This document shows positions 16,201 to 37,200 of a stretch of 64,000 bases of DNA, piece after piece. Source of the DNA: Paragordius varius (Eukaryota; Animalia; Nematomorpha); assembly GCA_964247055.1 (NCBI GenBank), contig OZ176053.1:4712001-4776000 (forward strand), read 5' to 3'. The stretch's first letter is position 1, and each line of letters begins with the position of its first letter. The position numbers and the translations under genes were made by a program. The notes under the pieces are model-generated. The model saw only the letters and a program-made list of their open reading frames with translations, made no database searches and was not told the DNA's origin.

Positions 16201-19200
16201 GTTAGATGACTAAAATGTTAATATACCACCATAGTAACTTGAAATCAATAACCAATATTTTCAACGAATTATAACTATTTTTACGAAACACGCTTTCATG
16301 TCATCCCATACAATTTGGGGTATTTAATTAACCGAATGCGTGTTTGAAGTCATATATAGTGTAAAAATATGGAGATATAGAAGGAAAATTTAAAATTGAT
16401 GCATTAATGCAAAAGATTAAAAACGTTATTTTTCTGTTTTATGGTTTAAACGTAAGGCGAAAATGAAATTTACTTCAAATGGGTTTGCAAGCTAATAACA
16501 GTTGCTATTTTATCCAATTTTTCTGTCAATAAAATGTTAATTTTTTGCTGAAAGCTTATAGTTGGTCCCATCCCAAATGGCTTCGCGGGCCGCATTTTTA
16601 AGCTTAAAAGTGATATCAATGATAAAATTAAATATGATCGGCCTTTTATTGAAAAATGGTGCTTTTGAAATTTGAGCTATAGATATTGTTTCGGATGAAA
16701 TTAAGAATTAAAATTCAAAAAGGAACATTATAAAGGAAAAATGATATTAGTTTTTGTATTTAAATTTAAAAAGGATTTCGTAGATAAAATATTTTTGCAA
16801 ATTAATGAATAATGGTCTATAGACTAAAATTTCAATTTACGCGGGCCGAACAAAAAGTTTGGGGGGCCGCATGCGGCCCAAGTTTGTAACATCCCTGGCT
16901 TAATTAATTTTTTTATATCTATTGCGAATAAATACTATTCATTGTTCTAAGGGAATTTTAAAGCCGTTAAATATTTTTAAATACCATTAATTCTTTTATT
17001 TAAAGTATATAGTTTTTATGTGAAAATTATATAGGGCTGTTTTCAACGGAATAAAGTATTGGTGAAAATATTGCTTTTGTATTCGTAAAATCTTTTACAG
17101 TCCAATGTTTTTCATATAATTAAATATTTATTGATGCCTATTATTTTTATTTTTTTAAAAAAAATGCGGCCCGCAAAGCCATTTGTGTTAGGCACTCATG
17201 TTTTAACACTCTGTGAATATTATTGTAAATATAATTTTGAATTTGAAATCGTAAACTATATATTAAACTTTTGAAATCTGTCTGATAAAATAAGTATACA
17301 TACACAAGGCTTTATTTAGGAAAATTCCTACGACACATGACGTGTAAAGAATCAGCCAAAATATATGCCATCGATAGTTTTCAATACTGCGAACCAGATA
17401 AGCCCAATACTGACCAATTAATGTGCTCGGTATATTACGGCTTGCAATCTTTATATCTATGTTAGTAGGACCGCTTGGATATAATTGCTTGTCGCATTTG
17501 CGTATTTCCGATGCGGAATTTTCATAGGATTGTGCCGATTCAATTATATCATACTTTTGATTTGTCCCATTAAAACCACCAAAGAACGGAATAAATTTGG
17601 CATTATGCGAAGATTTTATTTTGCTATTATTACTACCATTATTGTAATAATTAATAGTATCATCTTTGTGTAATTTGCAACGTTTCTTTAATTGACACAT
17701 GTTGGAATTGTTTTGGTTTTGACTGTGTCCAGTTTTAGGAGTTGGGGTAGTGTTAGAGCTACTTGATGATAAAATATTGTTATCCAATACATCGTCAGCG
17801 GAATATCTACGGGGTTCCGCAGAATTAAAGGTTTCAGCTTTGGAGCCAACTGGTTGCAATGAATGTGAAATTGGTCGAAATCCGTCACCACCACTCGTCG
17901 ATGTGTTATTGCCTTTTCTAAATATTGTACACAAATGTGTAAATTAATGATATTGACACGATCTATACTGTAAATTTAATTTACTGGACCTAACATTATA
18001 ATAACAGAGATGTAGGCCGGTGTCAGCCAGGTAAAATTTTTTTCCAAAAAACGGTTTAGCAATAAATGGTTTCATTACAAAAAATATTTTAACCAAAAAT
18101 GTTGCGATTTCGGTCTGTAGACAATGTTTTTTTGTAAAAATGGTTTTTAGTTCAATCGTTTTTTGGTAAATATTTATTTAAAATTTACAAATTTTTGATA
18201 AAAATATGAATATCTAGCCATTAAAATTTTACACGGCAATTTTTTATTAAAAAATAGGTTAATAATTTAAATAATATAAAATATTAAATAAATTGTAATA
18301 ATTTAAAATTAAAAAATTTAATATTTTATGTTAAACCGCGGTTCTGGTTACAAAAACGGTTAGAGCTGTTTATTAATTTTCTTTGATTAAAAATCCGTTT
18401 TCTGAGTTACACACAAAAATTAGAATTGATAAAATATAGTCTACTATTATAGAACACCATATATACCCTTTAATAATTGTTCGACGCGTTTTGAGATTGA
18501 AGTTTTTTTCTGTCCCATTTTTCCTTTTTCTTTGATTTTTGGGTAAACAAAATTTAACCCCTACAACAATTGCATTAAAGATATATATATTTATATGTTT
18601 CAATTTTAGAAATTATTATCTAATATGTTTTACATAAGTTTCCGCTACTATTGTAATTAAACAAGTGTTTGACCCAAATTTAATCGTAATTGCTGTGTGA
18701 GAAAAATAAACTAAAAAAACTTGAAATAATGATTATACGATTTTAATTTTTCCAAAATTACTTTAAGATAGTTTATTAAACGATCGATATACAATATACC
18801 ATTACAATTTAAATTCACCCTTGAACAATTTATATGTTTTTTAAGATTAAAAATAAATTTTTATATATTTTTAAAAAATAAAATTTTGTTTTCGATTAAA
18901 ATAATACTGAAAAAATGAATAATTTTGCCATAAAGATATAAATAATGAGTAATATTCAAAAACACATAATTTATTTTTAGGGTTAATTTGAATTGTTCAA
19001 GGGTGTTAAACTGTGTATATATGGGCAAGATGAAACTTTTACTTAAATTTAATGATTAGAAATTTTTGTTAATTAAATTTAATGCGGTAATTAAAAATAT
19101 ATGTTGTTTAATATCAAGAATTTACAAATTTTAACCTTCCCAATTAATTTGCAATTCGTCCATATCTCGTGATTGCCCGTTTATCATTGAAACAAAATCC

Positions 19201-22200
19201 TTAAAAGTTAAACTCTGTTTCCCCTTCAGATGTGGTTGATTAAATAAAATTTCTAATCCTTGATGTAATTCATTTTTGTTTAATTTGAAGCCCGATAATT
19301 CCATAAATGATCTATTTAATATAAAAATATGTGATATATAAAATTAATTTTTAATAAAATAAAGACAAGAATAACGAACGATATACTCTAGCATGCATAT
19401 GAAATTCGATTTTGTGAGGAATCCTTGTTTATCAGAATCATACATATCAAATATGACGCGGGCCCTATCTTCAGAACTACCTAATTAGTGAAAGAAATAT
19501 GGTTAATTCGATTCCACAATAATAGTGAATAATTTTAAATTTAAAAGATAATAGATGCTATTTATATAGAAACAAATAAAAATTATAAATATCACTACAG
19601 TCAAGCCCTTTAGTTCGAAAATAAGAATCCAACAAACAAATTTGAGGATTAGTTTTAAAATTCAAAAACAGTCATTATCATGGTATTTAAATGAAAATAA
19701 AATTGTCAAAAATTGAGCATATACATGTAACACATACCTTTTAGCAGTTATTTTGAAAAAGAGTTTCAATTTGTTGAAATGTTTATTTTTAAAAATAGTT
19801 GAAAGTTGAAGCTTGAGAATTTTTATTAAATACTAGCGTGAATCTCGTGCTGCTACGCAGCCCGAGGAAGTCCTTCGGACTTCTGGGGGGGGTTCGAAGT
19901 TTGGATTTGAATGGGTGTACCGTTTTTCCTGTAGATCACAAAGCCAGCATTTTCCATTTTTATAAATATATGGATTACCATAAATAATGTTTTAATATCC
20001 ATATATCTTTTAACATGCTATACATATGATAGATAATCCTTACTCAGCAGCTATCATCAAAGAAACGGTTGACTAAAATTTTTGCCTTTTAACTACGAAA
20101 AATTTTTCTCGAATTTTTACAGTCTCATACCGTGGGCAAAAAAATACAATCAAAAAAATATTTTTGTGGACTTTGTTTTTTTTGAAAAAAATGGCATTTT
20201 ACGGGGGGAGCGGGTAAAAAGAGGGCCTAAATCAAAAAAGTGACTCGACTATGTTCAGCGCGATCAAAATTAAGTAAACAAAATTCATATTTGAAATTGA
20301 ATGGTCCAACACGTTCTCCAAAAAATTGACTTAACCCATTTTTCACACGGGGTGGGCCCGAACTGGGGACCTAATTCCAAAAAAGGGCGAAGCTATTGTC
20401 GGGGCATTCAATAATGTTTATATTTTTTCGATATTTGGATTTGATTGGGATCACCGGTTTTCCGGAAACAGTTCACAAAGTTATATGAAAAATCAGTTTT
20501 TAGCGGGTAGCTCCTTACCCAGCAGCTATCATCAAATAAACGGTGGCCTAAAATTTGGTGCCTTTTAACAGGGAATACGTGGAATCTTTATTGAATTTTT
20601 AAGGTCTCATACCTAGGACGAAAAATCGATTTAAAAAATTATTTTTGTGGACTTTGTTTTTTGAAAAAAATGGCATTTTACGGGGGGAGCGGGTAAAAAG
20701 AGGGCCTAAATCAAAAAAGTGGCTCGACTATGTTCGGCGCAATCGAAAATAAGTAAACAAAATTCATATTTGAAATTGAATGGTCCAACACGTTCTCCAA
20801 AAAATTGACTTAACCCATTTTTCACACGGGGTGGGCCCGAACTGGGGACCTAATTCCAAAAAAGGGCGAAGCTATTGTCGGGGCATTCATTAATGTTTAT
20901 ATTTTTTCGATATTTGGATTTGATTGGGATCACCGGTTTTCCGGAAACAGTTCACAAAGTTATATGAAAAATCAGTTTTTAGCGGGTAGCTCCTTACCCA
21001 GCAGCTATCATCAAATAAACGGTGGACTAAAATTTTTGCCTTTTAACAGGGAATACGTGGAATCTTTATTGAATTTTTAAGGTCTCATACCTAGGACGAA
21101 AAATCGATTTAAAAAATTATTTTTGTGGACTTTGTTTTTTGAAAAAAATGGCATTTTACGGGGGGAGCGGGTAAAAAGAGGGCCTAAATCAAAAAAGTGG
21201 CTCGACTATGTTCGGCGCAATCGAAAATAAGTAAACAAAATTCATATTTGAAATTGAATGGTCCAACACGTTCTCCAAAAAATTGACTTAACCCATTTTT
21301 CACACGGGGTGGGCCCAAACTGGGGACCTAATTCCAAAAAAGGGCGAAGCTATTGTCGGGGCATTCATTAATGTTTATATTTTTTCGATATTTGGATTTG
21401 ATTGGGTCTACCGGTTTTCCTGTACCAGATCACAAAGCCAGCATTTTCCATTTTTATAAATATATAGATGAGGATAAATAATGTATTAATATCCATATAT
21501 CTTTTAACATGCTATACATATGATAGATACTCCTTACTCAGCAGCTATCATCAAAGAAACGCTTGACTAAAATTTTTGCCTTTTAACAGGCAATACGAAA
21601 AATCTTTCTCGAATTTTTACAGTCTCATACCGTGGACAAAAAAATACAATCAAAAAAATATTTTTGTGGACTTTGTTTTTTTTGAAAAAAATGGCATTTT
21701 ACGGGGGGAGCGGGTAAAAAGAGGGCCTAAATCAAAAAAGTGACTCGACTATGTTCAGCGCGATCAATATTAAGTAAACAAATTTCATATTTGAAATTGA
21801 ATGGTCCAACACGTTCTCCAAAAAATTGACTTAACCCATTTTTCACACGGGGTGGGCCCGAACTGGGGACCTAATTCCAAAAAAGGGCGAAGCTATTGTC
21901 GGGGCATTCATTAATGTTTATATTTTTTCGATATTTGGATTTGATTGGGATCACCGGTTTTCCGGAAACAGTTCACAAAGTTATATGAAAAATCAGTTTT
22001 TAGCGGGTAGCTCCTTACCCAGCAGCTATCATCAAATAAACGGTGGACTAAAATTTTTGCCTTTTAACAGGGAATACGTGGAATCTTTATTGAATTTTTA
22101 AGGTCTCATACCTAGGACGAAAAATCGATTTAAAAAATTATTTTTGTGGACTTTGTTTTTTGAAAAAAATGGCATTTTACGGGGGGAGCGGGTAAAAAGA

Positions 22201-25200
22201 GGGCCTAAATCAAAAAAGTGGCTCGACTATGTTCGGCGCAATCGAAAATAAGTAAACAAAATTCATATTTGAAATTGAATGGTCCAACACGTTCTCCAAA
22301 AAATTGACTTAACCCATTTTTCACACGGGGTGGGCCCAAACTGGGGACCTAATTCCAAAAAAGGGCGAAGCTATTGTCGGGGCATTCATTAATGTTTATA
22401 TTTTTTCGATATTTGGATTTGATTGGGTCTACCGGTTTTCCTGTACCAGATCACAAAGCCAGCATTTTCCATTTTTATAAATATATAGATGAGGATAAAT
22501 AATGTATTAATATCCATATATCTTTTAACATGCTATACATATGATAGATACTCCTTACTCAGCAGCTATCATCAAAGAAACGCTTGACTAAAATTTTTGC
22601 CTTTTAACAGGCAATACGAAAAATCTTTCTCGAATTTTTACAGTCTCATACCGTGGACAAAAAAATACAATCAAAAAAATATTTTTGTGGACTTTGTTTT
22701 TTTGAAAAAAATGGCATTTTACGGGGGGAGCGGGTAAAAAGAGGGCCTAAATCAAAAAAGTGACTCGACTATGTTCAGCGCGATCAAAATTAAGTAAACA
22801 AAATTCATATTTGAAATTGAATGGTCCAACACGTTCTCCAAAAAATTGACTTAACCCATTTTTCACACGGGGTGGGCCCGAACTGGGGACCTAATTCCAA
22901 AAAAGGGCGAAGCTATTGTCGGGGCATTCATTAATGTTTATATTTTTTCGATATTTGGATTTGATTGGGATCACCGGTTTTCCGGAAACAGTTCACAAAG
23001 TTATATGAAAAATCAGTTTTTAGCGGGTAGCTCCTTACCCAGCAGCTATCATCAAATAAACGGTGGACTAAAATTTTTGCCTTTTAACAGGGAATACGTG
23101 GAATCTTTATTGAATTTTTAAGGTCTCATACCTAGGACGAAAAATCGATTTAAAAAATTATTTTTGTGGACTTTGTTTTTTGAAAAAAATGGCATTTTAC
23201 GGGGGGAGCGGGTAAAAAGAGGGCCTAAATCAAAAAAGTGGCTCGACTATGTTCGGCGCAATCGAAAATAAGTAAACAAAATTCATATTTGAAATTGAAT
23301 GGTCCAACACGTTCTCCAAAAAATTGACTTAACCCATTTTTCACACGGGGTGGGCCCAAACTGGGGACCTAATTCCAAAAAAGGGCGAAGCTATTGTCGG
23401 GGCATTCATTAATGTTTATATTTTTTCGATATTTGGATTTGATTGGGTCTACCGGTTTTCCTGTACCAGATCACAAAGCCAGCATTTTCCATTTTTATAA
23501 ATATATAGATGAGGATAAATAATGTATTAATATCCATATATCTTTTAACATGCTATACATATGATAGATACTCCTTACTCAGCAGCTATCATCAAAGAAA
23601 CGCTTGACTAAAATTTTTGCCTTTTAACAGGCAATACGAAAAATCTTTCTCGAATTTTTACAGTCTCATACCGTGGACAAAAAAATACAATCAAAAAAAT
23701 ATTTTTGTGGACTTTGTTTTTTTGAAAAAAATGGCATTTTACGGGGGGAGCGGGTAAAAAGAGGGCCTAAATCAAAAAAGTGACTCGACTATGTTCAGCG
23801 CGATCAAAATTAAGTAAACAAAATTCATATTTGAAATTGAATGGTCCAACACGTTCTCCAAAAAATTGACTTAACCCATTTTTCACACGGGGTGGGCCCG
23901 AACTGGGGACCTAATTCCAAAAAAGGGCGAAGCTATTGTCGGGGCATTCATTAATGTTTATATTTTTTCGATATTTGGATTTGATTGGGATCACCGGTTT
24001 TCCGGAAACAGTTCACAAAGTTATATGAAAAATCAGTTTTTAGCGGGTAGCTCCTTACCCAGCAGCTATCATCAAATAAACGGTGGACTAAAATTTTTGC
24101 CTTTTAACAGGGAATACGTGGAATCTTTATTGAATTTTTAAGGTCTCATACCTAGGACGAAAAATCGATTTAAAAAATTATTTTTGTGGACTTTGTTTTT
24201 TGAAAAAAATGGCATTTTACGGGGGGAGCGGGTAAAAAGAGGGCCTAAATCAAAAAAGTGGCTCGACTATGTTCGGCGCAATCGAAAATAAGTAAACAAA
24301 AATCATATTTGAAATTGAATGGTCCAACACGTTCTCCGGAAAATTGTCTCAAAAACACGATTTTGTGGACTTCTGTTTTCAAAAAAAACCGTTTTTCATA
24401 CGGGGTGGGCCCGAACTGGGGGCCTATTTCAAAAAAAGGGCGAAGCTATTGTCGGGACATTTATTAATGATTATATTTTTTCGATATTTGGATTTGATTG
24501 GGTCTACCGGTTTTCCTGTACCAGATCACAAAGCCAGCATTTTCCATTTTTATAAATATATAGATGAGGATAAATAATGTATTAATATCCATATATCTTT
24601 TAACATGCTATACATATGATAGATACTCCTTACTCAGCAGCTATCATCAAAGAAACGCTTGACTAAAATTTTTGCCTTTTAACAGGCAATACGGAAAATC
24701 TTTCTCGAATTTTTACAGTCTCATACCGTGGACAAAAAAATACAATCAAAAAAATATTTTTGTGGACTTTGTTTTTTTTGAAAAAAATGGCATTTTACGG
24801 GGGGAGCGGGTAAAAAGAGGGCCTAAATCAAAAAAGTGACTCGACTATGTTCAGCGCGATCAAAATTAAGTAAACAAAATTCATATTTGAAATTGAATGG
24901 TCCAACACGTTCTCCAAAAAATTGACTTAACCCATTTTTCACACGGGGTGGGCCCGAACTGGGGACCTAATTCCAAAAAAGGGCGAAGCTATTGTCGGGG
25001 CATTCATTAATGTTTATATTTTTTCGATATTTGGATTTGATTGGGATCACCGGTTTTCCGGAAACAGTTCACAAAGTTATATGAAAAATCAGTTTTTAGC
25101 GGGTAGCTCCTTACCCAGCAGCTATCATCAAATAAACGGTGGACTAAAATTTTTGCCTTTTAACAGGGAATACGTGGAATCTTTATTGAATTTTTAAGGT

Positions 25201-28200
25201 CTCATACCTAGGACGAAAAATCGATTTAAAAAATTATTTTTGTGGACTTTGTTTTTTGAAAAAAATGGCATTTTACGGGGGGAGCGGGTAAAAAGAGGGC
25301 CTAAATCAAAAAAGTGGCTCGACTATGTTCGGCGCAATCGAAAATAAGTAAACAAAATTCATATTTGAAATTGAATGGTCCAACACGTTCTCCAAAAAAT
25401 TGACTTAACCCATTTTTCACACGGGGTGGGCCCAAACTGGGGACCTAATTCCAAAAAAGGGCGAAGCTATTGTCGGGGCATTCATTAATGTTTATATTTT
25501 TTCGATATTTGGATTTGATTGGGTCTACCGGTTTTCCTGTACCAGATCACAAAGCCAGCATTTTCCATTTTTATAAATATATAGATGAGGATAAATAATG
25601 TATTAATATCCATATATCTTTTAACATGCTATACATATGATAGATACTCCTTACTCAGCAGCTATCATCAAAGAAACGCTTGACTAAAATTTTTGCCTTT
25701 TAACAGGCAATACGAAAAATCTTTCTCGAATTTTTACAGTCTCATACCGTGGACAAAAAAATACAATCAAAAAAATATTTTTGTGGACTTTGTTTTTTTG
25801 AAAAAAATGGCATTTTACGGGGGGAGCGGGTAAAAAGAGGGCCTAAATCAAAAAAGTGACTCGACTATGTTCAGCGCGATCAAAATTAAGTAAACAAAAT
25901 TCATATTTGAAATTGAATGGTCCAACACGTTCTCCAAAAAATTGACTTAACCCATTTTTCACACGGGGTGGGCCCGAACTGGGGACCTAATTCCAAAAAA
26001 GGGCGAAGCTATTGTCGGGGCATTCATTAATGTTTATATTTTTTCGATATTTGGATTTGATTGGGATCACCGGTTTTCCGGAAACAGTTCACAAAGTTAT
26101 ATGAAAAATCAGTTTTTAGCGGGTAGCTCCTTACCCAGCAGCTATCATCAAATAAACGGTGGACTAAAATTTTTGCCTTTTAACAGGGAATACGTGGAAT
26201 CTTTATTGAATTTTTAAGGTCTCATACCTAGGACGAAAAATCGATTTAAAAAATTATTTTTGTGGACTTTGTTTTTTGAAAAAAATGGCATTTTACGGGG
26301 GGAGCGGGTAAAAAGAGGGCCTAAATCAAAAAAGTGGCTCGACTATGTTCGGCGCAATCGAAAATAAGTAAACAAAAATCATATTTGAAATTGAATGGTC
26401 CAACACGTTCTCCGGAAAATTGTCTCAAAAACACGATTTTGTGGACTTCTGTTTTCAAAAAAAAACCCGTTTTTCATACGGGGTGGGCCCGAACTGGGGG
26501 CCTATTTCAAAAAAAGGGCGAAGCTATTGTCGGGACATTTATTAATGATTATATTTTTTCGATATTTGGATTTGATTGGGTCTACCGGTTTTCCTGTACC
26601 AGATCACAAAGCCAGCATTTTCCATTTTTATAAATATATAGAAAAAACCCGTTTTTCATACGGGGTGGGCCCGAACTGGGGGCCTATTTCAAAAAAAGGG
26701 CGAAGCTATTGTCGGGACATTTATTAATGATTATATTTTTTCGATATTTGGATTTGATTGGGTCTACCGGTTTTCCTGTACCAGATCACAAAGCCAGCAT
26801 TTTCCATTTTTATAAATATATAGATGAGGATAAATAATGTATTAATATCCATATATCTTTTAACATGCTATACATATGATAGATACTCCTTACTCAGCAG
26901 CTATCATCAAAGAAACGCTTGACTAAAATTTTTGCCTTTTAACAGGCAATACGAAAAATCTTTCTCGAATTTTTACAGTCTCATACCGTGGACAAAAAAA
27001 TACAATCAAAAAAATATTTTTGTGGACTTTGTTTTTTTTGAAAAAAATGGCATTTTACGGGGGGAGCGGGTAAAAAGAGGGCCTAAATCAAAAAAGTGAC
27101 TCGACTATGTTCAGCGCGATCAAAATTAAGTAAACAAAATTCATATTTGAAATTGAATGGTCCAACACGTTCTCCAAAAAATTGACTTAACCCATTTTTC
27201 ACACGGGGTGGGCCCGAACTGGGGACCTAATTCCAAAAAAGGGCGAAGCTATTGTCGGGGCATTCATTAATGTTTATATTTTTTCGATATTTGGATTTGA
27301 TTGGGATCACCGGTTTTCCGGAAACAGTTCACAAAGTTATATGAAAAATCAGTTTTTAGCGGGTAGCTCCTTACCCAGCAGCTATCATCAAATAAACGGT
27401 GGACTAAAATTTTTGCCTTTTAACAGGGAATACGTGGAATCTTTATTGAATTTTTAAGGTCTCATACCTAGGACGAAAAATCGATTTAAAAAATTATTTT
27501 TGTGGACTTTGTTTTTTGAAAAAAATGGCATTTTACGGGGGGAGCGGGTAAAAAGAGGGCCTAAATCAAAAAAGTGGCTCGACTATGTTCGGCGCAATCG
27601 AAAATAAGTAAACAAAATTCATATTTGAAATTGAATGGTCCAACACGTTCTCCAAAAAATTGACTTAACCCATTTTTCACACGGGGTGGGCCCAAACTGG
27701 GGACCTAATTCCAAAAAAGGGCGAAGCTATTGTCGGGGCATTCATTAATGTTTATATTTTTTCGATATTTGGATTTGATTGGGTCTACCGGTTTTCCTGT
27801 ACCAGATCACAAAGCCAGCATTTTCCATTTTTATAAATATATAGATGAGGATAAATAATGTATTAATATCCATATATCTTTTAACATGCTATACATATGA
27901 TAGATACTCCTTACTCAGCAGCTATCATCAAAGAAACGCTTGACTAAAATTTTTGCCTTTTAACAGGCAATACGAAAAATCTTTCTCGAATTTTTACAGT
28001 CTCATACCGTGGACAAAAAAATACAATCAAAAAAATATTTTTGTGGACTTTGTTTTTTTGAAAAAAATGGCATTTTACGGGGGGAGCGGGTAAAAAGAGG
28101 GCCTAAATCAAAAAAGTGACTCGACTATGTTCAGCGCGATCAAAATTAAGTAAACAAAATTCATATTTGAAATTGAATGGTCCAACACGTTCTCCAAAAA

Positions 28201-31200
28201 ATTGACTTAACCCATTTTTCACACGGGGTGGGCCCGAACTGGGGACCTAATTCCAAAAAAGGGCGAAGCTATTGTCGGGGCATTCATTAATGTTTATATT
28301 TTTTCGATATTTGGATTTGATTGGGATCACCGGTTTTCCGGAAACAGTTCACAAAGTTATATGAAAAATCAGTTTTTAGCGGGTAGCTCCTTACCCAGCA
28401 GCTATCATCAAATAAACGGTGGACTAAAATTTTTGCCTTTTAACAGGGAATACGTGGAATCTTTATTGAATTTTTAAGGTCTCATACCTAGGACGAAAAA
28501 TCGATTTAAAAAATTATTTTTGTGGACTTTGTTTTTTGAAAAAAATGGCATTTTACGGGGGGAGCGGGTAAAAAGAGGGCCTAAATCAAAAAAGTGGCTC
28601 GACTATGTTCGGCGCAATCGAAAATAAGTAAACAAAATTCATATTTGAAATTGAATGGTCCAACACGTTCTCCAAAAAATTGACTTAACCCATTTTTCAC
28701 ACGGGGTGGGCCCAAACTGGGGACCTAATTCCAAAAAAGGGCGAAGCTATTGTCGGGGCATTCATTAATGTTTATATTTTTTCGATATTTGGATTTGATT
28801 GGGTCTACCGGTTTTCCTGTACCAGATCACAAAGCCAGCATTTTCCATTTTTATAAATATATAGATGAGGATAAATAATGTATTAATATCCATATATCTT
28901 TTAACATGCTATACATATGATAGATACTCCTTACTCAGCAGCTATCATCAAAGAAACGCTTGACTAAAATTTTTGCCTTTTAACAGGCAATACGAAAAAT
29001 CTTTCTCGAATTTTTACAGTCTCATACCGTGGACAAAAAAATACAATCAAAAAAATATTTTTGTGGACTTTGTTTTTTTTGAAAAAAATGGCATTTTACG
29101 GGGGGAGCGGGTAAAAAGAGGGCCTAAATCAAAAAAGTGACTCGACTATGTTCAGCGCGATCAATATTAAGTAAACAAATTTCATATTTGAAATTGAATG
29201 GTCCAACACGTTCTCCAAAAAATTGACTTAACCCATTTTTCACACGGGGTGGGCCCGAACTGGGGACCTAATTCCAAAAAAGGGCGAAGCTATTGTCGGG
29301 GCATTCATTAATGTTTATATTTTTTCGATATTTGGATTTGATTGGGATCACCGGTTTTCCGGAAACAGTTCACAAAGTTATATGAAAAATCAGTTTTTAG
29401 CGGGTAGCTCCTTACCCAGCAGCTATCATCAAATAAACGGTGGACTAAAATTTTTGCCTTTTAACAGGGAATACGTGGAATCTTTATTGAATTTTTAAGG
29501 TCTCATACCTAGGACGAAAAATCGATTTAAAAAATTATTTTTGTGGACTTTGTTTTTTGAAAAAAATGGCATTTTACGGGGGGAGCGGGTAAAAAGAGGG
29601 CCTAAATCAAAAAAGTGGCTCGACTATGTTCGGCGCAATCGAAAATAAGTAAACAAAATTCATATTTGAAATTGAATGGTCCAACACGTTCTCCAAAAAA
29701 TTGACTTAACCCATTTTTCACACGGGGTGGGCCCAAACTGGGGACCTAATTCCAAAAAAGGGCGAAGCTATTGTCGGGGCATTCATTAATGTTTATATTT
29801 TTTCGATATTTGGATTTGATTGGGTCTACCGGTTTTCCTGTACCAGATCACAAAGCCAGCATTTTCCATTTTTATAAATATATAGATGAGGATAAATAAT
29901 GTATTAATATCCATATATCTTTTAACATGCTATACATATGATAGATACTCCTTACTCAGCAGCTATCATCAAAGAAACGCTTGACTAAAATTTTTGCCTT
30001 TTAACAGGCAATACGAAAAATCTTTCTCGAATTTTTACAGTCTCATACCGTGGACAAAAAAATACAATCAAAAAAATATTTTTGTGGACTTTGTTTTTTT
30101 GAAAAAAATGGCATTTTACGGGGGGAGCGGGTAAAAAGAGGGCCTAAATCAAAAAAGTGACTCGACTATGTTCAGCGCGATCAAAATTAAGTAAACAAAA
30201 TTCATATTTGAAATTGAATGGTCCAACACGTTCTCCAAAAAATTGACTTAACCCATTTTTCACACGGGGTGGGCCCGAACTGGGGACCTAATTCCAAAAA
30301 AGGGCGAAGCTATTGTCGGGGCATTCATTAATGTTTATATTTTTTCGATATTTGGATTTGATTGGGATCACCGGTTTTCCGGAAACAGTTCACAAAGTTA
30401 TATGAAAAATCAGTTTTTAGCGGGTAGCTCCTTACCCAGCAGCTATCATCAAATAAACGGTGGACTAAAATTTTTGCCTTTTAACAGGGAATACGTGGAA
30501 TCTTTATTGAATTTTTAAGGTCTCATACCTAGGACGAAAAATCGATTTAAAAAATTATTTTTGTGGACTTTGTTTTTTGAAAAAAATGGCATTTTACGGG
30601 GGGAGCGGGTAAAAAGAGGGCCTAAATCAAAAAAGTGGCTCGACTATGTTCGGCGCAATCGAAAATAAGTAAACAAAAATCATATTTGAAATTGAATGGT
30701 CCAACACGTTCTCCGGAAAATTGTCTCAAAAACACGATTTTGTGGACTTCTGTTTTCAAAAAAAACCGTTTTTCATACGGGGTGGGCCCGAACTGGGGGC
30801 CTATTTCAAAAAAAGGGCGAAGCTATTGTCGGGACATTTATTAATGATTATATTTTTTCGATATTTGGATTTGATTGGGTCTACCGGTTTTCCTGTACCA
30901 GATCACAAAGCCAGCATTTTCCATTTTTATAAATATATAGATGAGGATAAATAATGTATTAATATCCATATATCTTTTAACATGCTATACATATGATAGA
31001 TACTCCTTACTCAGCAGCTATCATCAAAGAAACGCTTGACTAAAATTTTTGCCTTTTAACAGGCAATACGGAAAATCTTTCTCAAATTTTTACAGTCTCA
31101 TACCGTGGACAAAAAAATACAATCAAAAAAATATTTTTGTGGACTTTGTTTTTTTTGAAAAAAATGGCATTTTACGGGGGGAGCGGGTAAAAAGAGGGCC

Positions 31201-34200
31201 TAAATCAAAAAAGTGACTCGACTATGTTCAGCGCGATCAAAATTAAGTAAACAAAATTCATATTTGAAATTGAATGGTCCAACACGTTCTCCAAAAAATT
31301 GACTTAACCCATTTTTCACACGGGGTGGGCCCGAACTGGGGACCTAATTCCAAAAAAGGGCGAAGCTATTGTCGGGGCATTCATTAATGTTTATATTTTT
31401 TCGATATTTGGATTTGATTGGGATCACCGGTTTTCCGGAAACAGTTCACAAAGTTATATGAAAAATCAGTTTTTAGCGGGTAGCTCCTTACCCAGCAGCT
31501 ATCATCAAATAAACGGTGGACTAAAATTTTTGCCTTTTAACAGGGAATACGTGGAATCTTTATTGAATTTTTAAGGTCTCATACCTAGGACGAAAAATCG
31601 ATTTAAAAAATTATTTTTGTGGACTTTGTTTTTTGAAAAAAATGGCATTTTACGGGGGGAGCGGGTAAAAAGAGGGCCTAAATCAAAAAAGTGGCTCGAC
31701 TATGTTCGGCGCAATCGAAAATAAGTAAACAAAATTCATATTTGAAATTGAATGGTCCAACACGTTCTCCAAAAAATTGACTTAACCCATTTTTCACACG
31801 GGGTGGGCCCAAACTGGGGACCTAATTCCAAAAAAGGGCGAAGCTATTGTCGGGGCATTCATTAATGTTTATATTTTTTCGATATTTGGATTTGATTGGG
31901 TCTACCGGTTTTCCTGTACCAGATCACAAAGCCAGCATTTTCCATTTTTATAAATATATAGATGAGGATAAATAATGTATTAATATCCATATATCTTTTA
32001 ACATGCTATACATATGATAGATACTCCTTACTCAGCAGCTATCATCAAAGAAACGCTTGACTAAAATTTTTGCCTTTTAACAGGCAATACGAAAAATCTT
32101 TCTCGAATTTTTACAGTCTCATACCGTGGACAAAAAAATACAATCAAAAAAATATTTTTGTGGACTTTGTTTTTTTGAAAAAAATGGCATTTTACGGGGG
32201 GAGCGGGTAAAAAGAGGGCCTAAATCAAAAAAGTGACTCGACTATGTTCAGCGCGATCAAAATTAAGTAAACAAAATTCATATTTGAAATTGAATGGTCC
32301 AACACGTTCTCCAAAAAATTGACTTAACCCATTTTTCACACGGGGTGGGCCCGAACTGGGGACCTAATTCCAAAAAAGGGCGAAGCTATTGTCGGGGCAT
32401 TCATTAATGTTTATATTTTTTCGATATTTGGATTTGATTGGGATCACCGGTTTTCCGGAAACAGTTCACAAAGTTATATGAAAAATCAGTTTTTAGCGGG
32501 TAGCTCCTTACCCAGCAGCTATCATCAAATAAACGGTGGACTAAAATTTTTGCCTTTTAACAGGGAATACGTGGAATCTTTATTGAATTTTTAAGGTCTC
32601 ATACCTAGGACGAAAAATCGATTTAAAAAATTATTTTTGTGGACTTTGTTTTTTGAAAAAAATGGCATTTTACGGGGGGAGCGGGTAAAAAGAGGGCCTA
32701 AATCAAAAAAGTGGCTCGACTATGTTCGGCGCAATCGAAAATAAGTAAACAAAAATCATATTTGAAATTGAATGGTCCAACACGTTCTCCGGAAAATTGT
32801 CTCAAAAACACGATTTTGTGGACTTCTGTTTTCAAAAAAAAACCCGTTTTTCATACGGGGTGGGCCCGAACTGGGGGCCTATTTCAAAAAAAGGGCGAAG
32901 CTATTGTCGGGACATTTATTAATGATTATATTTTTTCGATATTTGGATTTGATTGGGTCTACCGGTTTTCCTGTACCAGATCACAAAGCCAGCATTTTCC
33001 ATTTTTATAAATATATAGATGAGGATAAATAATGTATTAATATCCATATATCTTTTAACATGCTATACATATGATAGATACTCCTTACTCAGCAGCTATC
33101 ATCAAAGAAACGCTTGACTAAAATTTTTGCCTTTTAACAGGCAATACGAAAAATCTTTCTCGAATTTTTACAGTCTCATACCGTGGACAAAAAAATACAA
33201 TCAAAAAAATATTTTTGTGGACTTTGTTTTTTTTGAAAAAAATGGCATTTTACGGGGGGAGCGGGTAAAAAGAGGGCCTAAATCAAAAAAGTGACTCGAC
33301 TATGTTCAGCGCGATCAAAATTAAGTAAACAAAATTCATATTTGAAATTGAATGGTCCAACACGTTCTCCAAAAAATTGACTTAACCCATTTTTCACACG
33401 GGGTGGGCCCGAACTGGGGACCTAATTCCAAAAAAGGGCGAAGCTATTGTCGGGGCATTCATTAATGTTTATATTTTTTCGATATTTGGATTTGATTGGG
33501 ATCACCGGTTTTCCGGAAACAGTTCACAAAGTTATATGAAAAATCAGTTTTTAGCGGGTAGCTCCTTACCCAGCAGCTATCATCAAATAAACGGTGGACT
33601 AAAATTTTTGCCTTTTAACAGGGAATACGTGGAATCTTTATTGAATTTTTAAGGTCTCATACCTAGGACGAAAAATCGATTTAAAAAATTATTTTTGTGG
33701 ACTTTGTTTTTTGAAAAAAATGGCATTTTACGGGGGGAGCGGGTAAAAAGAGGGCCTAAATCAAAAAAGTGGCTCGACTATGTTCGGCGCAATCGAAAAT
33801 AAGTAAACAAAATTCATATTTGAAATTGAATGGTCCAACACGTTCTCCAAAAAATTGACTTAACCCATTTTTCACACGGGGTGGGCCCAAACTGGGGACC
33901 TAATTCCAAAAAAGGGCGAAGCTATTGTCGGGGCATTCATTAATGTTTATATTTTTTCGATATTTGGATTTGATTGGGTCTACCGGTTTTCCTGTACCAG
34001 ATCACAAAGCCAGCATTTTCCATTTTTATAAATATATAGATGAGGATAAATAATGTATTAATATCCATATATCTTTTAACATGCTATACATATGATAGAT
34101 ACTCCTTACTCAGCAGCTATCATCAAAGAAACGCTTGACTAAAATTTTTGCCTTTTAACAGGCAATACGAAAAATCTTTCTCGAATTTTTACAGTCTCAT

Positions 34201-37200
34201 ACCGTGGACAAAAAAATACAATCAAAAAAATATTTTTGTGGACTTTGTTTTTTTGAAAAAAATGGCATTTTACGGGGGGAGCGGGTAAAAAGAGGGCCTA
34301 AATCAAAAAAGTGACTCGACTATGTTCAGCGCGATCAAAATTAAGTAAACAAAATTCATATTTGAAATTGAATGGTCCAACACGTTCTCCAAAAAATTGA
34401 CTTAACCCATTTTTCACACGGGGTGGGCCCGAACTGGGGACCTAATTCCAAAAAAGGGCGAAGCTATTGTCGGGGCATTCATTAATGTTTATATTTTTTC
34501 GATATTTGGATTTGATTGGGATCACCGGTTTTCCGGAAACAGTTCACAAAGTTATATGAAAAATCAGTTTTTAGCGGGTAGCTCCTTACCCAGCAGCTAT
34601 CATCAAATAAACGGTGGACTAAAATTTTTGCCTTTTAACAGGGAATACGTGGAATCTTTATTGAATTTTTAAGGTCTCATACCTAGGACGAAAAATCGAT
34701 TTAAAAAATTATTTTTGTGGACTTTGTTTTTTGAAAAAAATGGCATTTTACGGGGGGAGCGGGTAAAAAGAGGGCCTAAATCAAAAAAGTGGCTCGACTA
34801 TGTTCGGCGCAATCGAAAATAAGTAAACAAAAATCATATTTGAAATTGAATGGTCCAACACGTTCTCCGGAAAATTGTCTCAAAAACACGATTTTGTGGA
34901 CTTCTGTTTTCAAAAAAAACCCGTTTTTCATACGGGGTGGGCCCGAACTGGGGGCCTATTTCAAAAAAAGGGCGAAGCTATTGTCGGGACATTTATTAAT
35001 GATTATATTTTTTCGATATTTGGATTTGATTGGGTCTACCGGTTTTCCTGTACCAGATCACAAAGCCAGCATTTTCCATTTTTATAAATATATAGATTAT
35101 TTAAATTCAGTCCGTAATATATCAATTTTATAATTTAGTTGTTCGTACCTTTTGAAAAGATTATGGTGAATTCTAAAAACTCTTTGAAAGATATTCGGCC
35201 GTTTTTGTCTTTATCCACGAGGGTGAACATATTTTTGACGAAAGTCGATGATTCTTTTAACGCTAATGCTTCGGCAAATTCTTGGGGAGTCAGTTCGCAC
35301 TGTAATAATCGTTTTAATTTGGTTTGTAACGTTTTACCTCTGTTTAAATGTAAAAAATTATTTTGTAATGATCAACATTTTGAGTTAGATTATTAGGTTT
35401 ATTATTTAATATTACTGCTTTTCACTGATTTGTTTAATTCCCCTTTGGTTGTCATATGTCGTTTCTTGATTAGATCCAATGGACGTATTTAAAGAACATT
35501 TTTTTACTGTGAAAATTCGCTTCACTTTTCGACATATATTGTATTTGGCATATCTTGAAATTATGGAATCCATTGCATAGTTTTCTAAATTTTGGTCATC
35601 GTCTACCTCGTTTGTTAAGATTTGATCCACGTTAAAGTTTTCATCAAATGCCTAAATTAAATATATAATAAGTAAGCATTTAAAAGTAGTGTTTTCTTTG
35701 AGAAAACTTGACAATTTCTATATTAAATAATATTAATACAGTTTTTTTAAACCTCATAAATCTTATTTTTCCAATTAACATGGTTAGTAATATTATATTT
35801 GTAGGATCATATTTAGTTTGGACTTAAATGGCCAAACATTAACAAAAATTGGTTATTGTATTATTATATTCGCCTTTATCAATTATTTTATATAAATATG
35901 GTAAAAGATCAACGCAATAATAGACAAATTAGTTTTTAGCAAAAATTAAATTACTAATGAGAAGGCTGTCTTGAAGAACATATCCAATTGTTTAACTCTA
36001 TCCTTACGAGTAAAAGCGATTTCGAACAAAAGTTTTCGCGAACTGACTTCGTGCTGGAACAAATGGGTGCCGGACACATCAGAAAATTGTTGGATTTCAT
36101 TTTGAAAATTGAGGAATGACGTTTTGTCATGAAAGTGCAAAATCTAAAATGAAGAAAATTAAAGGGCTTAATAAAAAAGAATTGACAAATCTTGATCTTA
36201 AGTTACCAGACTTATTTAATACTTTAATTTTGGGATCATTTAATTTCCATGATCGAATATAAATATTATATATTTAAAAATATAATAATTTATTTTTGGT
36301 ATCAAGACAATTGGTTTTGAGAATTTGAATTTAACCAAATTAATTTTTCAATGAACCCAAAACCAAAACTTAATGTCACAATGGTCACAATGATTTGACC
36401 ACAAATCAAAAGGTAGAGAATTCCTTCAAACGTTAGAAATTTAAAGGGGAACAAATATTTGAGTGGCTACTGACATACAACTACCTACCCCAACCTTTAT
36501 TGTGTACAACAGAAAAAAACATGTTGATCCAAATTTTCCATGATATTTAATTTTTTGTCAACCATACACAATATAAAATAGGTTTAAAACATAAAATTTA
36601 TCTTACAAATTGTTTATAACAGTTTTTATAGTATTTGAGACGATCATATTATTATCACAAAATATTAAAATAGTATGTAATATTTAATTGTAAAATTCTT
36701 ACATGGTCATACTCTTTTGGAATTTTGAGAAGCAAATAAAAATGGTTAGACCGGTTCTCTTTGATTGTATAAACCTCAATATGCGAAAGTTGATCAAAGT
36801 TTATGACTCTTGTGTATGGTTCCCGGCGTTCGCCATACAGATTAATTGTAAAATTTTGTGGATTAAAACATATGACTATGGGAGAAAATTTATTTGTTTC
36901 CATCCATTCATCGGCTAAAACAAAACATTTTAGATAAAATACTTGTCAATGCTCAAATATTAGTTAAACATATCAATAAGTTAAAATACCGTTAAACCTA
37001 AAATTTACCTTTGAGCAATTCAAATTCACCATAAAAATAAAATATTGTTTTTTGGCAAATCCTTATTGATATAAATTTTTCGTTTATAGTTTATTTTTAA
37101 ACAAAACTTTATTTTTAAAATCATCCAAAAACGTAATTTATTTTTAGGGTGAGTGTTTAAAATGTTTAAGAGTAAATTTAATATGTTCAATGGTTAAATG

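Follow-up and report, generated by a model that had tools for sequence, protein, structure and literature searches.

A Helitron with sixteen left ends and one right end in a dual-oxidase intron of Paragordius varius, probably expanded in situ by out-of-register homologous exchange

The window, that is the whole 64,000-nt stretch of Paragordius varius DNA analysed here, carries on its minus strand exons of a dual-oxidase (Duox) gene. An intron between EF-hand exons (approximately 35148-19479, ∼15.67 kb) hosts a tandem array, and 15,264 bp of this intron belong to a Helitron. The initial annotation had placed the array within a genic intron of an animal; the gene is dual oxidase, and the Helitron lies in its orientation (sense). 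An intron of ∼400 bp has been inflated to 15.7 kb by the element, in a genome whose introns are otherwise very short. The features are as follows, a slash marking a junction or insertion point.

35149..35310, minus strand: upstream Duox exon, first EF-hand; last base 35149, then a GT donor; start approximate.
19833..35096, minus strand: whole non-autonomous Helitron, flanks A/TC and CTAG/T; 13-14 full units plus a truncated one, a long one and a 142-bp terminal piece.
26825..35096, minus strand: units 1-8, order A B A B A B B' B.
26643..26824, minus strand: unit 9, truncated A-type, first 182 bp only; its T-run abuts the TC of unit 10.
21469..26642, minus strand: units 10-14, order A B A B' B.
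19975..21468, minus strand: unit 15 (L), 1494 bp, with three subrepeats of 478 bp and the variant tail ...GGTAA; source of the first 719 bp of the B units.
19833..19974, minus strand: terminal 142 bp, an internally deleted mini-element of 82 bp 5' head plus 60 bp 3' terminus.
19844..19883, minus strand: two 3' subterminal hairpins, CTAG downstream at 19836-19833.
19386..19478, minus strand: next Duox exon, second EF-hand.

A motif search recovered the 25-nt core of the 5' motif 16 times on the minus strand with no mismatches, against an expectation of zero in shuffled sequence (100 shuffles). The corresponding TC starts lie at 35096, 34040, 33019, 31962, 30941, 29886, 28865, 27845, 26824, 26642, 25585, 24564, 23509, 22489, 21468 and 19974. 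Read 5' to 3' on the minus strand, units 1-8 measure 1056, 1021, 1057, 1021, 1055, 1021, 1020 and 1021 bp, and units 9-16 measure 182, 1057, 1021, 1055, 1020, 1021, 1494 and 142 bp, giving an A size class of 1055-1057 bp and a B class of 1020-1021 bp. Each of units 1-8 opens with a 5' head and closes with a 61-bp tail ending ...CCTCA. No coding, tRNA or Rfam content was found when the units were searched for it.

The 3' terminal motif is present as a single copy in the array (CTAG at 19836-19833), with no CTAG/TC junction and no internal 3' end anywhere within it. Two hairpins lie side by side near this terminus (19883-19867 and 19866-19844), stopping 11 nt short of the last base of the element, and have a folding energy of -15.3 kcal/mol (z = -4.3; 0 of 200 shuffles equally good). 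The minus-strand flanks read ...AAATAA/TC on the 5' side and CTAG/TATTT on the 3' side, placing the insertion point on the plus strand between A19832 and T35097, and no TSD is visible. The structure first annotated, namely 16 left ends with a single hairpin and CTAG at 19833, inserted at an A/T site without duplication, was recovered in every part.

The TC 5' terminus, CTRR 3' terminus, subterminal hairpin and A/T insertion without TSD are the canonical features of Helitron1, and the same ends were observed at the level of the family. Among the best dispersed copies, 20 of 20 3' ends read CTAG/T, with unrelated flanks and no flank repeats seen. At the 5' end, A/TC was found in all 11 arrays inspected (the window and ten others) and at 8 further true 5' ends; genome-wide, 1433 of 1453 heads (98.6%) are preceded by A, and 145 exact 3' 21-mers are present. 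The dispersed copies therefore do end TC/CTAG at A/T sites, as expected if the original identification was right, and the element is a canonical non-autonomous Helitron (TC...CTAG, A/T-inserting) of a young, abundant family.

A relative bearing the RepHel domains has the same ends as this non-autonomous family. The decayed 11.2-kb copy on contig 8 (C8:2816973-2828141, minus strand) has a head with two mismatches, 516 bp that are 88.5% identical to the unit and a 3' end of 62 bp at 95% identity. It retains Rep and PIF1 domains (PF14214 and PF05970 matches) and is riddled with stops, and no ORF exceeds 174 aa. The sequence flanking this contig-8 copy showed no homology to the unit tail. A search of the genome for an intact RepHel detected decayed copies only, the longest ORF being 259 aa.

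The repeated head is a family trait. Genome-wide counts are 1453 for heads, 145 for tails and 459 for internal tail/head junctions (193 CCTCA/TC and 266 GGTAA/TC). Old copies (80-93% identity) are simple, with one head and without the tail, and in the young subfamily even the basic element is two- or three-headed. The solo 142-bp mini-Helitron was considered as the basic element and rejected, since the unit tail precedes the terminal 142 bp in all 20 best copies. Elements with three heads, whose tails depend on position (CCTCA first, GGTAA next), turn up repeatedly at independent sites. A genome-wide search for other arrays, with spacings, loci and junction patterns taken among the matches listed, revealed dozens, of which at least three, on contigs 1, 4 and 5, are of similar or larger size; the contig-1 array consists of 12 units of 1056 bp that are 99.5-100% identical, and multi-unit spacing patterns are present in other arrays too. 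The reiterated start is common in this genome, and its layout is already known elsewhere. The earlier view of a singular nascent satellite does not hold, multi-head copies being usual in the subfamily. The window array has satellite-like traits (units 98.4-100% identical, A-B alternation, nested 478-bp subrepeats); as to a satellite compartment, it is 15 kb long and lies within a gene intron, and the arrays of the family are dispersed over separate insertion sites.

The relationships among units were resolved array by array. In the unit tree, the 13 full units of the window group as one clade (support 99/98); the contig-1 units form their own clade (100/99), and small arrays are likewise monophyletic. 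Unit identity is 98.4-100% within the window array and 94-98% between arrays. With its units in a single clade and 98.4-100% identical, the array can be taken to have grown in situ, though gene conversion could mimic such array-specific clades. The A units are identical and the B units are 0-0.4% apart, in keeping with the very young age first proposed.

Transposition of a ready-made array from a donor elsewhere in the genome is scarcely credible. Multi-unit elements do transpose, as the recurrence of three-head elements at independent sites implies, and the diagnostic 35-mer of the window is common to 17 other loci (57 places in 18 loci in all); with this distribution, window-specific SNPs failed as a proof of uniqueness. 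However, units are monophyletic per array, both the B spacing (1021 bp) and the 182-bp junction are confined to the window locus among the matches listed, and the contig-5 array, the closest among those matches, differs by 1-2% and in spacing.

An assembly artefact that inflated the copy number or the unit order is also very unlikely. Fifteen kilobases of near-identical 1-kb units are hard to assemble, yet the variants are ordered (A/B, homopolymer lengths, the 182-bp unit and the 1494-bp unit) and the array is bordered by clean, unique sequence within a coherent gene. Moreover, comparable arrays with different structures are found on other contigs, and the assembly has just 44 contigs.

The route of growth is recorded in the B units. 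An exact prefix of 719 bp is common to unit 15 and six of the eight B units, and in B units 6 and 14 the exact prefix shared with unit 15 is 706 bp; the exact suffix common to B' and A units is 792 bp. A and B differ by 14 substitutions and a 35-bp indel, all at B positions 95-228 and all matching unit 15. These differences are clustered and derive no support as a measure of elapsed time, a reading of A/B divergence that was rejected. Judged from sequence identity, the 1021-bp B unit is an exact A x L chimera, with a unit-15 prefix (719 bp) and an A suffix (at least 792 bp), which points to out-of-register homologous exchange as its source. Conversion at the subrepeat level is also present in the array.

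The initial annotation had attributed the array to rolling-circle amplification, in which RepHel copies a circular intermediate several times, or starts again at the 5' end, giving a concatemer that has many 5' ends but a single 3' end. The sharing of one tail by 16 heads, the identical A units, the contig-1 array of 12 near-identical units and the join of unit 9 to unit 10 exactly at TC all fit such copying, and three papers (PMC5148889, PMC11934779, PMC12001565) cite an attribution of the many-heads/one-tail layout of plants to rolling-circle replication. For uniform arrays such as that on contig 1, copying of a one-unit circle fits equally well as unequal exchange. However, array units have no 3' end and no CTAG/TC junction, the A x L chimeras are not a product of circle copying, and A, B, B' and truncated units are mixed in one array; growth was extremely recent, yet all RepHel copies found are decayed. 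The only exact CTAG/TC junction in the genome, on contig 1, was considered as a rolling-circle concatemer and rejected: the elements on its two sides differ in structure and are 96% alike, which indicates an independent tandem insertion. As 3'-5' junctions are absent inside the array and intact RepHel was not found, rolling-circle copying is neither needed nor favoured, and we regard it as unlikely; the B chimeras indicate unequal homologous exchange in its place.

It appears probable, instead, that a canonical Helitron of composite build inserted in the Duox intron and expanded there by out-of-register homologous exchange. The young subfamily is itself a composite, in which a 3'-truncated copy, consisting of the head, subrepeats of 478 bp and a foreign 61-bp tail with a terminal A, is fused to the mini-element, whose 142 bp supply the only 3' end; read-through or self-insertion may account for the fusion. 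As a consequence, every copy of the young subfamily carries two or three start signals ∼1 kb apart. The initial insertion may have been roughly A-L-T. Out-of-register exchange between its direct repeats, either by unequal sister-chromatid exchange or by homology-guided template switching, would first have produced the chimeric B unit and would later have multiplied A-B blocks, up to 15 units. The B chimera, the termini, the family structure and the monophyly of each array are observed directly; we infer in which order events took place, how the composite came about and by which precise pathway recombination ran.

Against the exchange model stands the junction between units 9 and 10, which is non-homologous and falls exactly on TC, a position that random breakage would strike with a chance of ∼2/1056 positions. 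This join, made through the T-run of unit 9, hints at nicking at an internal head. A nick-stimulated form of exchange, in which RepHel nicks at internal heads and fork collapse is followed by misaligned sister repair with occasional microhomology, is compatible with the preferred explanation, and the very frequent independent expansion in this Helitron family is in its favour. Nevertheless, it depends on one post-hoc junction, no second case was seen in the 20 heads lacking a preceding A, intact RepHel was not detected and 1-kb direct repeats expand without any nuclease; we entertain it as a minor possibility. A further suggestion, which we consider rather doubtful, is that the reiterated heads may be live RepHel cleavage sites whose nicking drives unequal exchange, making the family a self-propelled satellite generator. 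If so, the TC junction of units 9 and 10 would be the footprint of a nick repaired via microhomology.

With growth by homologous exchange as the preferred reading, the locus offers a clear instance, open to dating, of a transposon becoming tandem DNA within a conserved gene of an animal. From the exact A x L chimera the growth route can be read as homologous out-of-register exchange, and growth driven in this way qualifies the usual rolling-circle attribution of many-heads/one-tail Helitron arrays. Furthermore, the dozens of independent arrays, ranging from 2 to more than 20 units, would make a good natural series for array growth rates.

Multi-5'/single-3' Helitrons and tandem arrays of truncated Helitrons were reportedly described in plant centromeres by Xiong, Dooner and Du (Plant J, 2016). 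The plant arrays are centromeric and ascribed to rolling-circle replication, whereas those of the window family lie in euchromatic introns and hold direct sequence evidence of unequal homologous exchange. In Fusarium, FoHeli elements have several left ends with one right end, the duplicated 5' pieces being few and shorter than 200 bp, and are proposed to originate by chimeric transposition that starts at an upstream 5' end and finishes at a 3' end further downstream (PMC5148889). The end layout is alike, and the chimeric-transposition proposal matches the composite structure of the window family; its unit, by contrast with the short FoHeli pieces, is ∼1 kb long and present in up to 15-25 copies.

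Oyster and Drosophila DINE-type Helitrons contain central repeats in tandem. Internal repeats of 121-1996 nt in 2-7 copies are known from Xenopus Heli2Xen/Heli1Xen1 (PMC12001565), and the subtelomeric HSymSHlR of Hydractinia has a 372-bp repeat unit (PMC11934779). All of these animal arrays resemble the present one as non-autonomous Helitrons with tandem repeats that expand locally and are satellite-like; their repeats are internal, and a start at the first nucleotide of the element is not described for them, whereas the unit of the window family includes the cleavage-site terminus. Finally, chimeric units, A-B dimers, multi-unit duplications and array-specific homogenisation are shared with satellite higher-order repeats formed by unequal crossing-over, from which the window array differs in being bounded by transposon termini, in lying at a transposon insertion site and in its length of 15 kb.

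A motif search of the window for the 25-nt core of the 5' terminus returned 16 matches with no mismatches, all on the minus strand, and none in shuffled sequence. Cutting the Helitron block (19833-35096) at each TC gave minus-strand units 1 to 16 of 1056, 1021, 1057, 1021, 1055, 1021, 1020, 1021, 182, 1057, 1021, 1055, 1020, 1021, 1494 and 142 bp, in agreement with the 16 starts (heads) listed in the initial annotation. Units of 1055-1057 bp are termed A, those of 1020-1021 bp B or B', unit 15 L and the terminal 142 bp T. The 3' terminus is confined to T, as expected of the single hairpin and CTAG terminator described previously. Since the flanks read AAATAA/TC (5') and CTAG/TATTT (3'), the block lies between A and T without duplication, the insertion site originally proposed.

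19883-19867 and 19866-19844, minus strand: two adjacent 3' hairpins (-15.3 kcal/mol, z = -4.3)
19836-19833, minus strand: terminal CTAG, end of the array
35149, minus strand: last base of the upstream dual-oxidase (Duox) exon, followed by a GT donor
19478-19386, minus strand: next Duox exon

The Duox gene, identified by animal haem peroxidase, FAD_binding_8 and NAD_binding_6 matches, spans approximately 12000-44000 on the minus strand, with peroxidase exons at ∼41-43 kb and NADPH-oxidase exons at ∼14-16 kb. EF-hand exons on both sides of the array confirm its location in a gene intron. The element, in gene orientation, occupies 15,264 bp of an intron of ∼15.67 kb, by far the largest in this stretch, where Duox introns are mostly short. 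Searches of the units for tRNAs, Rfam families and Pfam domains found none. A Ser/Asn-rich, low-complexity open stretch of 223 aa on the Duox strand (17263-17934, minus), between the EF-hand and transmembrane exons, may represent a protein insertion peculiar to this lineage.

The AT-rich assembly (110.6 Mb, 44 contigs), in which the window lies on contig 4 (C4:4712001-4776000), was searched for related sequences. Many near-identical copies of the terminal 142 bp occur elsewhere, and all 20 inspected end in CTAG, followed by T and unrelated flank. Upstream, homology stops at a TC preceded by A at 8 loci and in all 11 arrays inspected; exact heads number 1453, only 20 without the preceding A, and exact 3' ends 145. 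Dispersed members, whose ends had been named as the test of Helitron identity, thus start A/TC and finish CTAG/T next to unrelated flanks, and the window element has the canonical structure of a Helitron. Three old copies on contig 2 (C2:1345339, 1355385 and 1378255) have a common 5' flank, CTTTGAG/TC, with G instead of A, and probably lie within a ∼10-23-kb segmental duplication.

Each unit consists of a unique 5' terminus of 31 bp, one to three ∼478-bp subrepeats and a 61-bp tail, and the terminal 142 bp of an 82-bp head joined to a 60-bp 3' terminus. A tail precedes the terminal 142 bp in 20 of 20 copies (GGTAA/TC or CCTCA/TC), these junctions number 266 and 193, respectively, genome-wide, and the repeated start is not restricted to the window locus. 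Older copies (80-93% identity, 560-1010 bp) are simple: a single head is followed by one or two subrepeats and then by the 3' end, without tail or second head. The young subfamily, we infer, has a composite origin, in which a 3'-truncated copy would have been joined to a foreign 61-bp stretch with A as its last base, and to a mini-element providing the terminator. Copies with three heads, whose tails are specific to their position, are found repeatedly at independent sites; therefore, multi-head elements do transpose. Among the matches listed, covering half of the genome, copies mostly have 1-3 internal junctions, a few 4-7 and three 11-14. Further arrays lie on contigs 1, 3, 4 and 5 (C1 to C5).

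C1:7348143-7363579: 15 heads, 12 spacings of exactly 1056 bp
C4:9810807-9822596 (approximate): at least 12 heads, adjoining a 5-head copy
C5:5395112-5416481: 14 matches to a diagnostic 35-mer, 3' end at 5417279
C1:10349572-10355244: 567-577-bp units, one subrepeat each, GGTAA tails, 11 junctions
C3:6366567-6369450: 567-577-bp units, one subrepeat each, GGTAA tails, 6 junctions

Maximum-likelihood analysis of 39 full units placed the 13 from the window in one clade (99/98) and the 13 from the first contig-1 array in another (100/99); the remainder included three small arrays, each its own clade. Units of the window array are 98.4-100% identical to one another, those of the contig-1 array 99.5-100%, and units of different arrays 94-98%. 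The A units differ only in homopolymer length and the B units by 0-0.4%. The proposed young satellite in an animal intron is thus borne out as to youth and setting, but it is not singular.

Between A and B there are 14 substitutions and one indel of 35 bp; every difference falls within B positions 95-228, and at each of them B agrees with L. An exact 719-bp prefix is common to L and six of the eight B units (706 bp for units 6 and 14), and an exact 792-bp suffix to B' and A. B is therefore an L × A chimera, exactly the product expected of misaligned homologous exchange in a founder A-L-T, which would yield A-B-L-T; A-B blocks would have multiplied afterwards. The L-type states correspond to the second subrepeat, and therefore conversion acts also at the subrepeat level. 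The 1021-bp spacing is absent from the other arrays listed, which places these events at the window locus.

The initial annotation had invoked rolling-circle amplification, which predicts many heads with one 3' end. We consider this origin unlikely for the window array: none of its repeated units contains a 3' end, no CTAG/TC junction occurs inside it, and B is a chimera. Rolling-circle copying may have produced perfectly uniform arrays elsewhere. The sole exact CTAG/TC junction in the genome (C1:9228880) was rejected as a concatemer, as it joins two differently built elements, 96% alike; this indicates an independent insertion at the A/T made by the resident's first T.

C1:9227677-9231029: CTAG/TC element pair; upstream member without the last head, its unit fused straight to the 3' terminus

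The newest growth, represented by the identical A units, also contrasts with the decay of every copy found of the autonomous protein, RepHel (no ORF above 259 aa at any RepHel locus found in the assembly). The search for an autonomous partner yielded one with the same ends, but only as a wreck, full of stops and with a longest ORF of 174 aa. Its head has 2 mismatches to the window family, 516 bp match the unit at 88.5%, and the 3' 62 bp match at 95%. A second, inverted Rep fragment (C8:2817195-2817719, plus strand) also lies within this element, as does an old non-autonomous fragment nested in it.

C8:2816973-2828141, minus strand: decayed autonomous Helitron of 11.2 kb on contig 8, with Helitron_like_N and PIF1 matches

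Unit 9 corresponds to an A unit cut off after 182 bp; this duplicate is 100% identical, and its T-run passes straight into the TC of unit 10. The breakpoint is limited to /TC or T/C, 2 of ∼1056 positions, as would follow a nick at the internal head and microhomology repair, with transposase stimulating exchanges. Only one such junction occurs among the 20 heads without a preceding A and it may have arisen by chance; a nick is rather unlikely.

Growth in place by homologous exchange thus appears to account for the window array. Plants, fungi and some animals are known to carry many-headed, single-tailed Helitrons and tandem arrays derived from Helitrons (PMC5148889, PMC11934779, PMC12001565), and the window array is a further, well-resolved case in another animal lineage. 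For Fusarium Helitrons (FoHeli) with multiple 5' termini, chimeric transposition or self-insertion has been proposed (PMC5148889), the same route as the composite one suggested here for the young hairworm subfamily.
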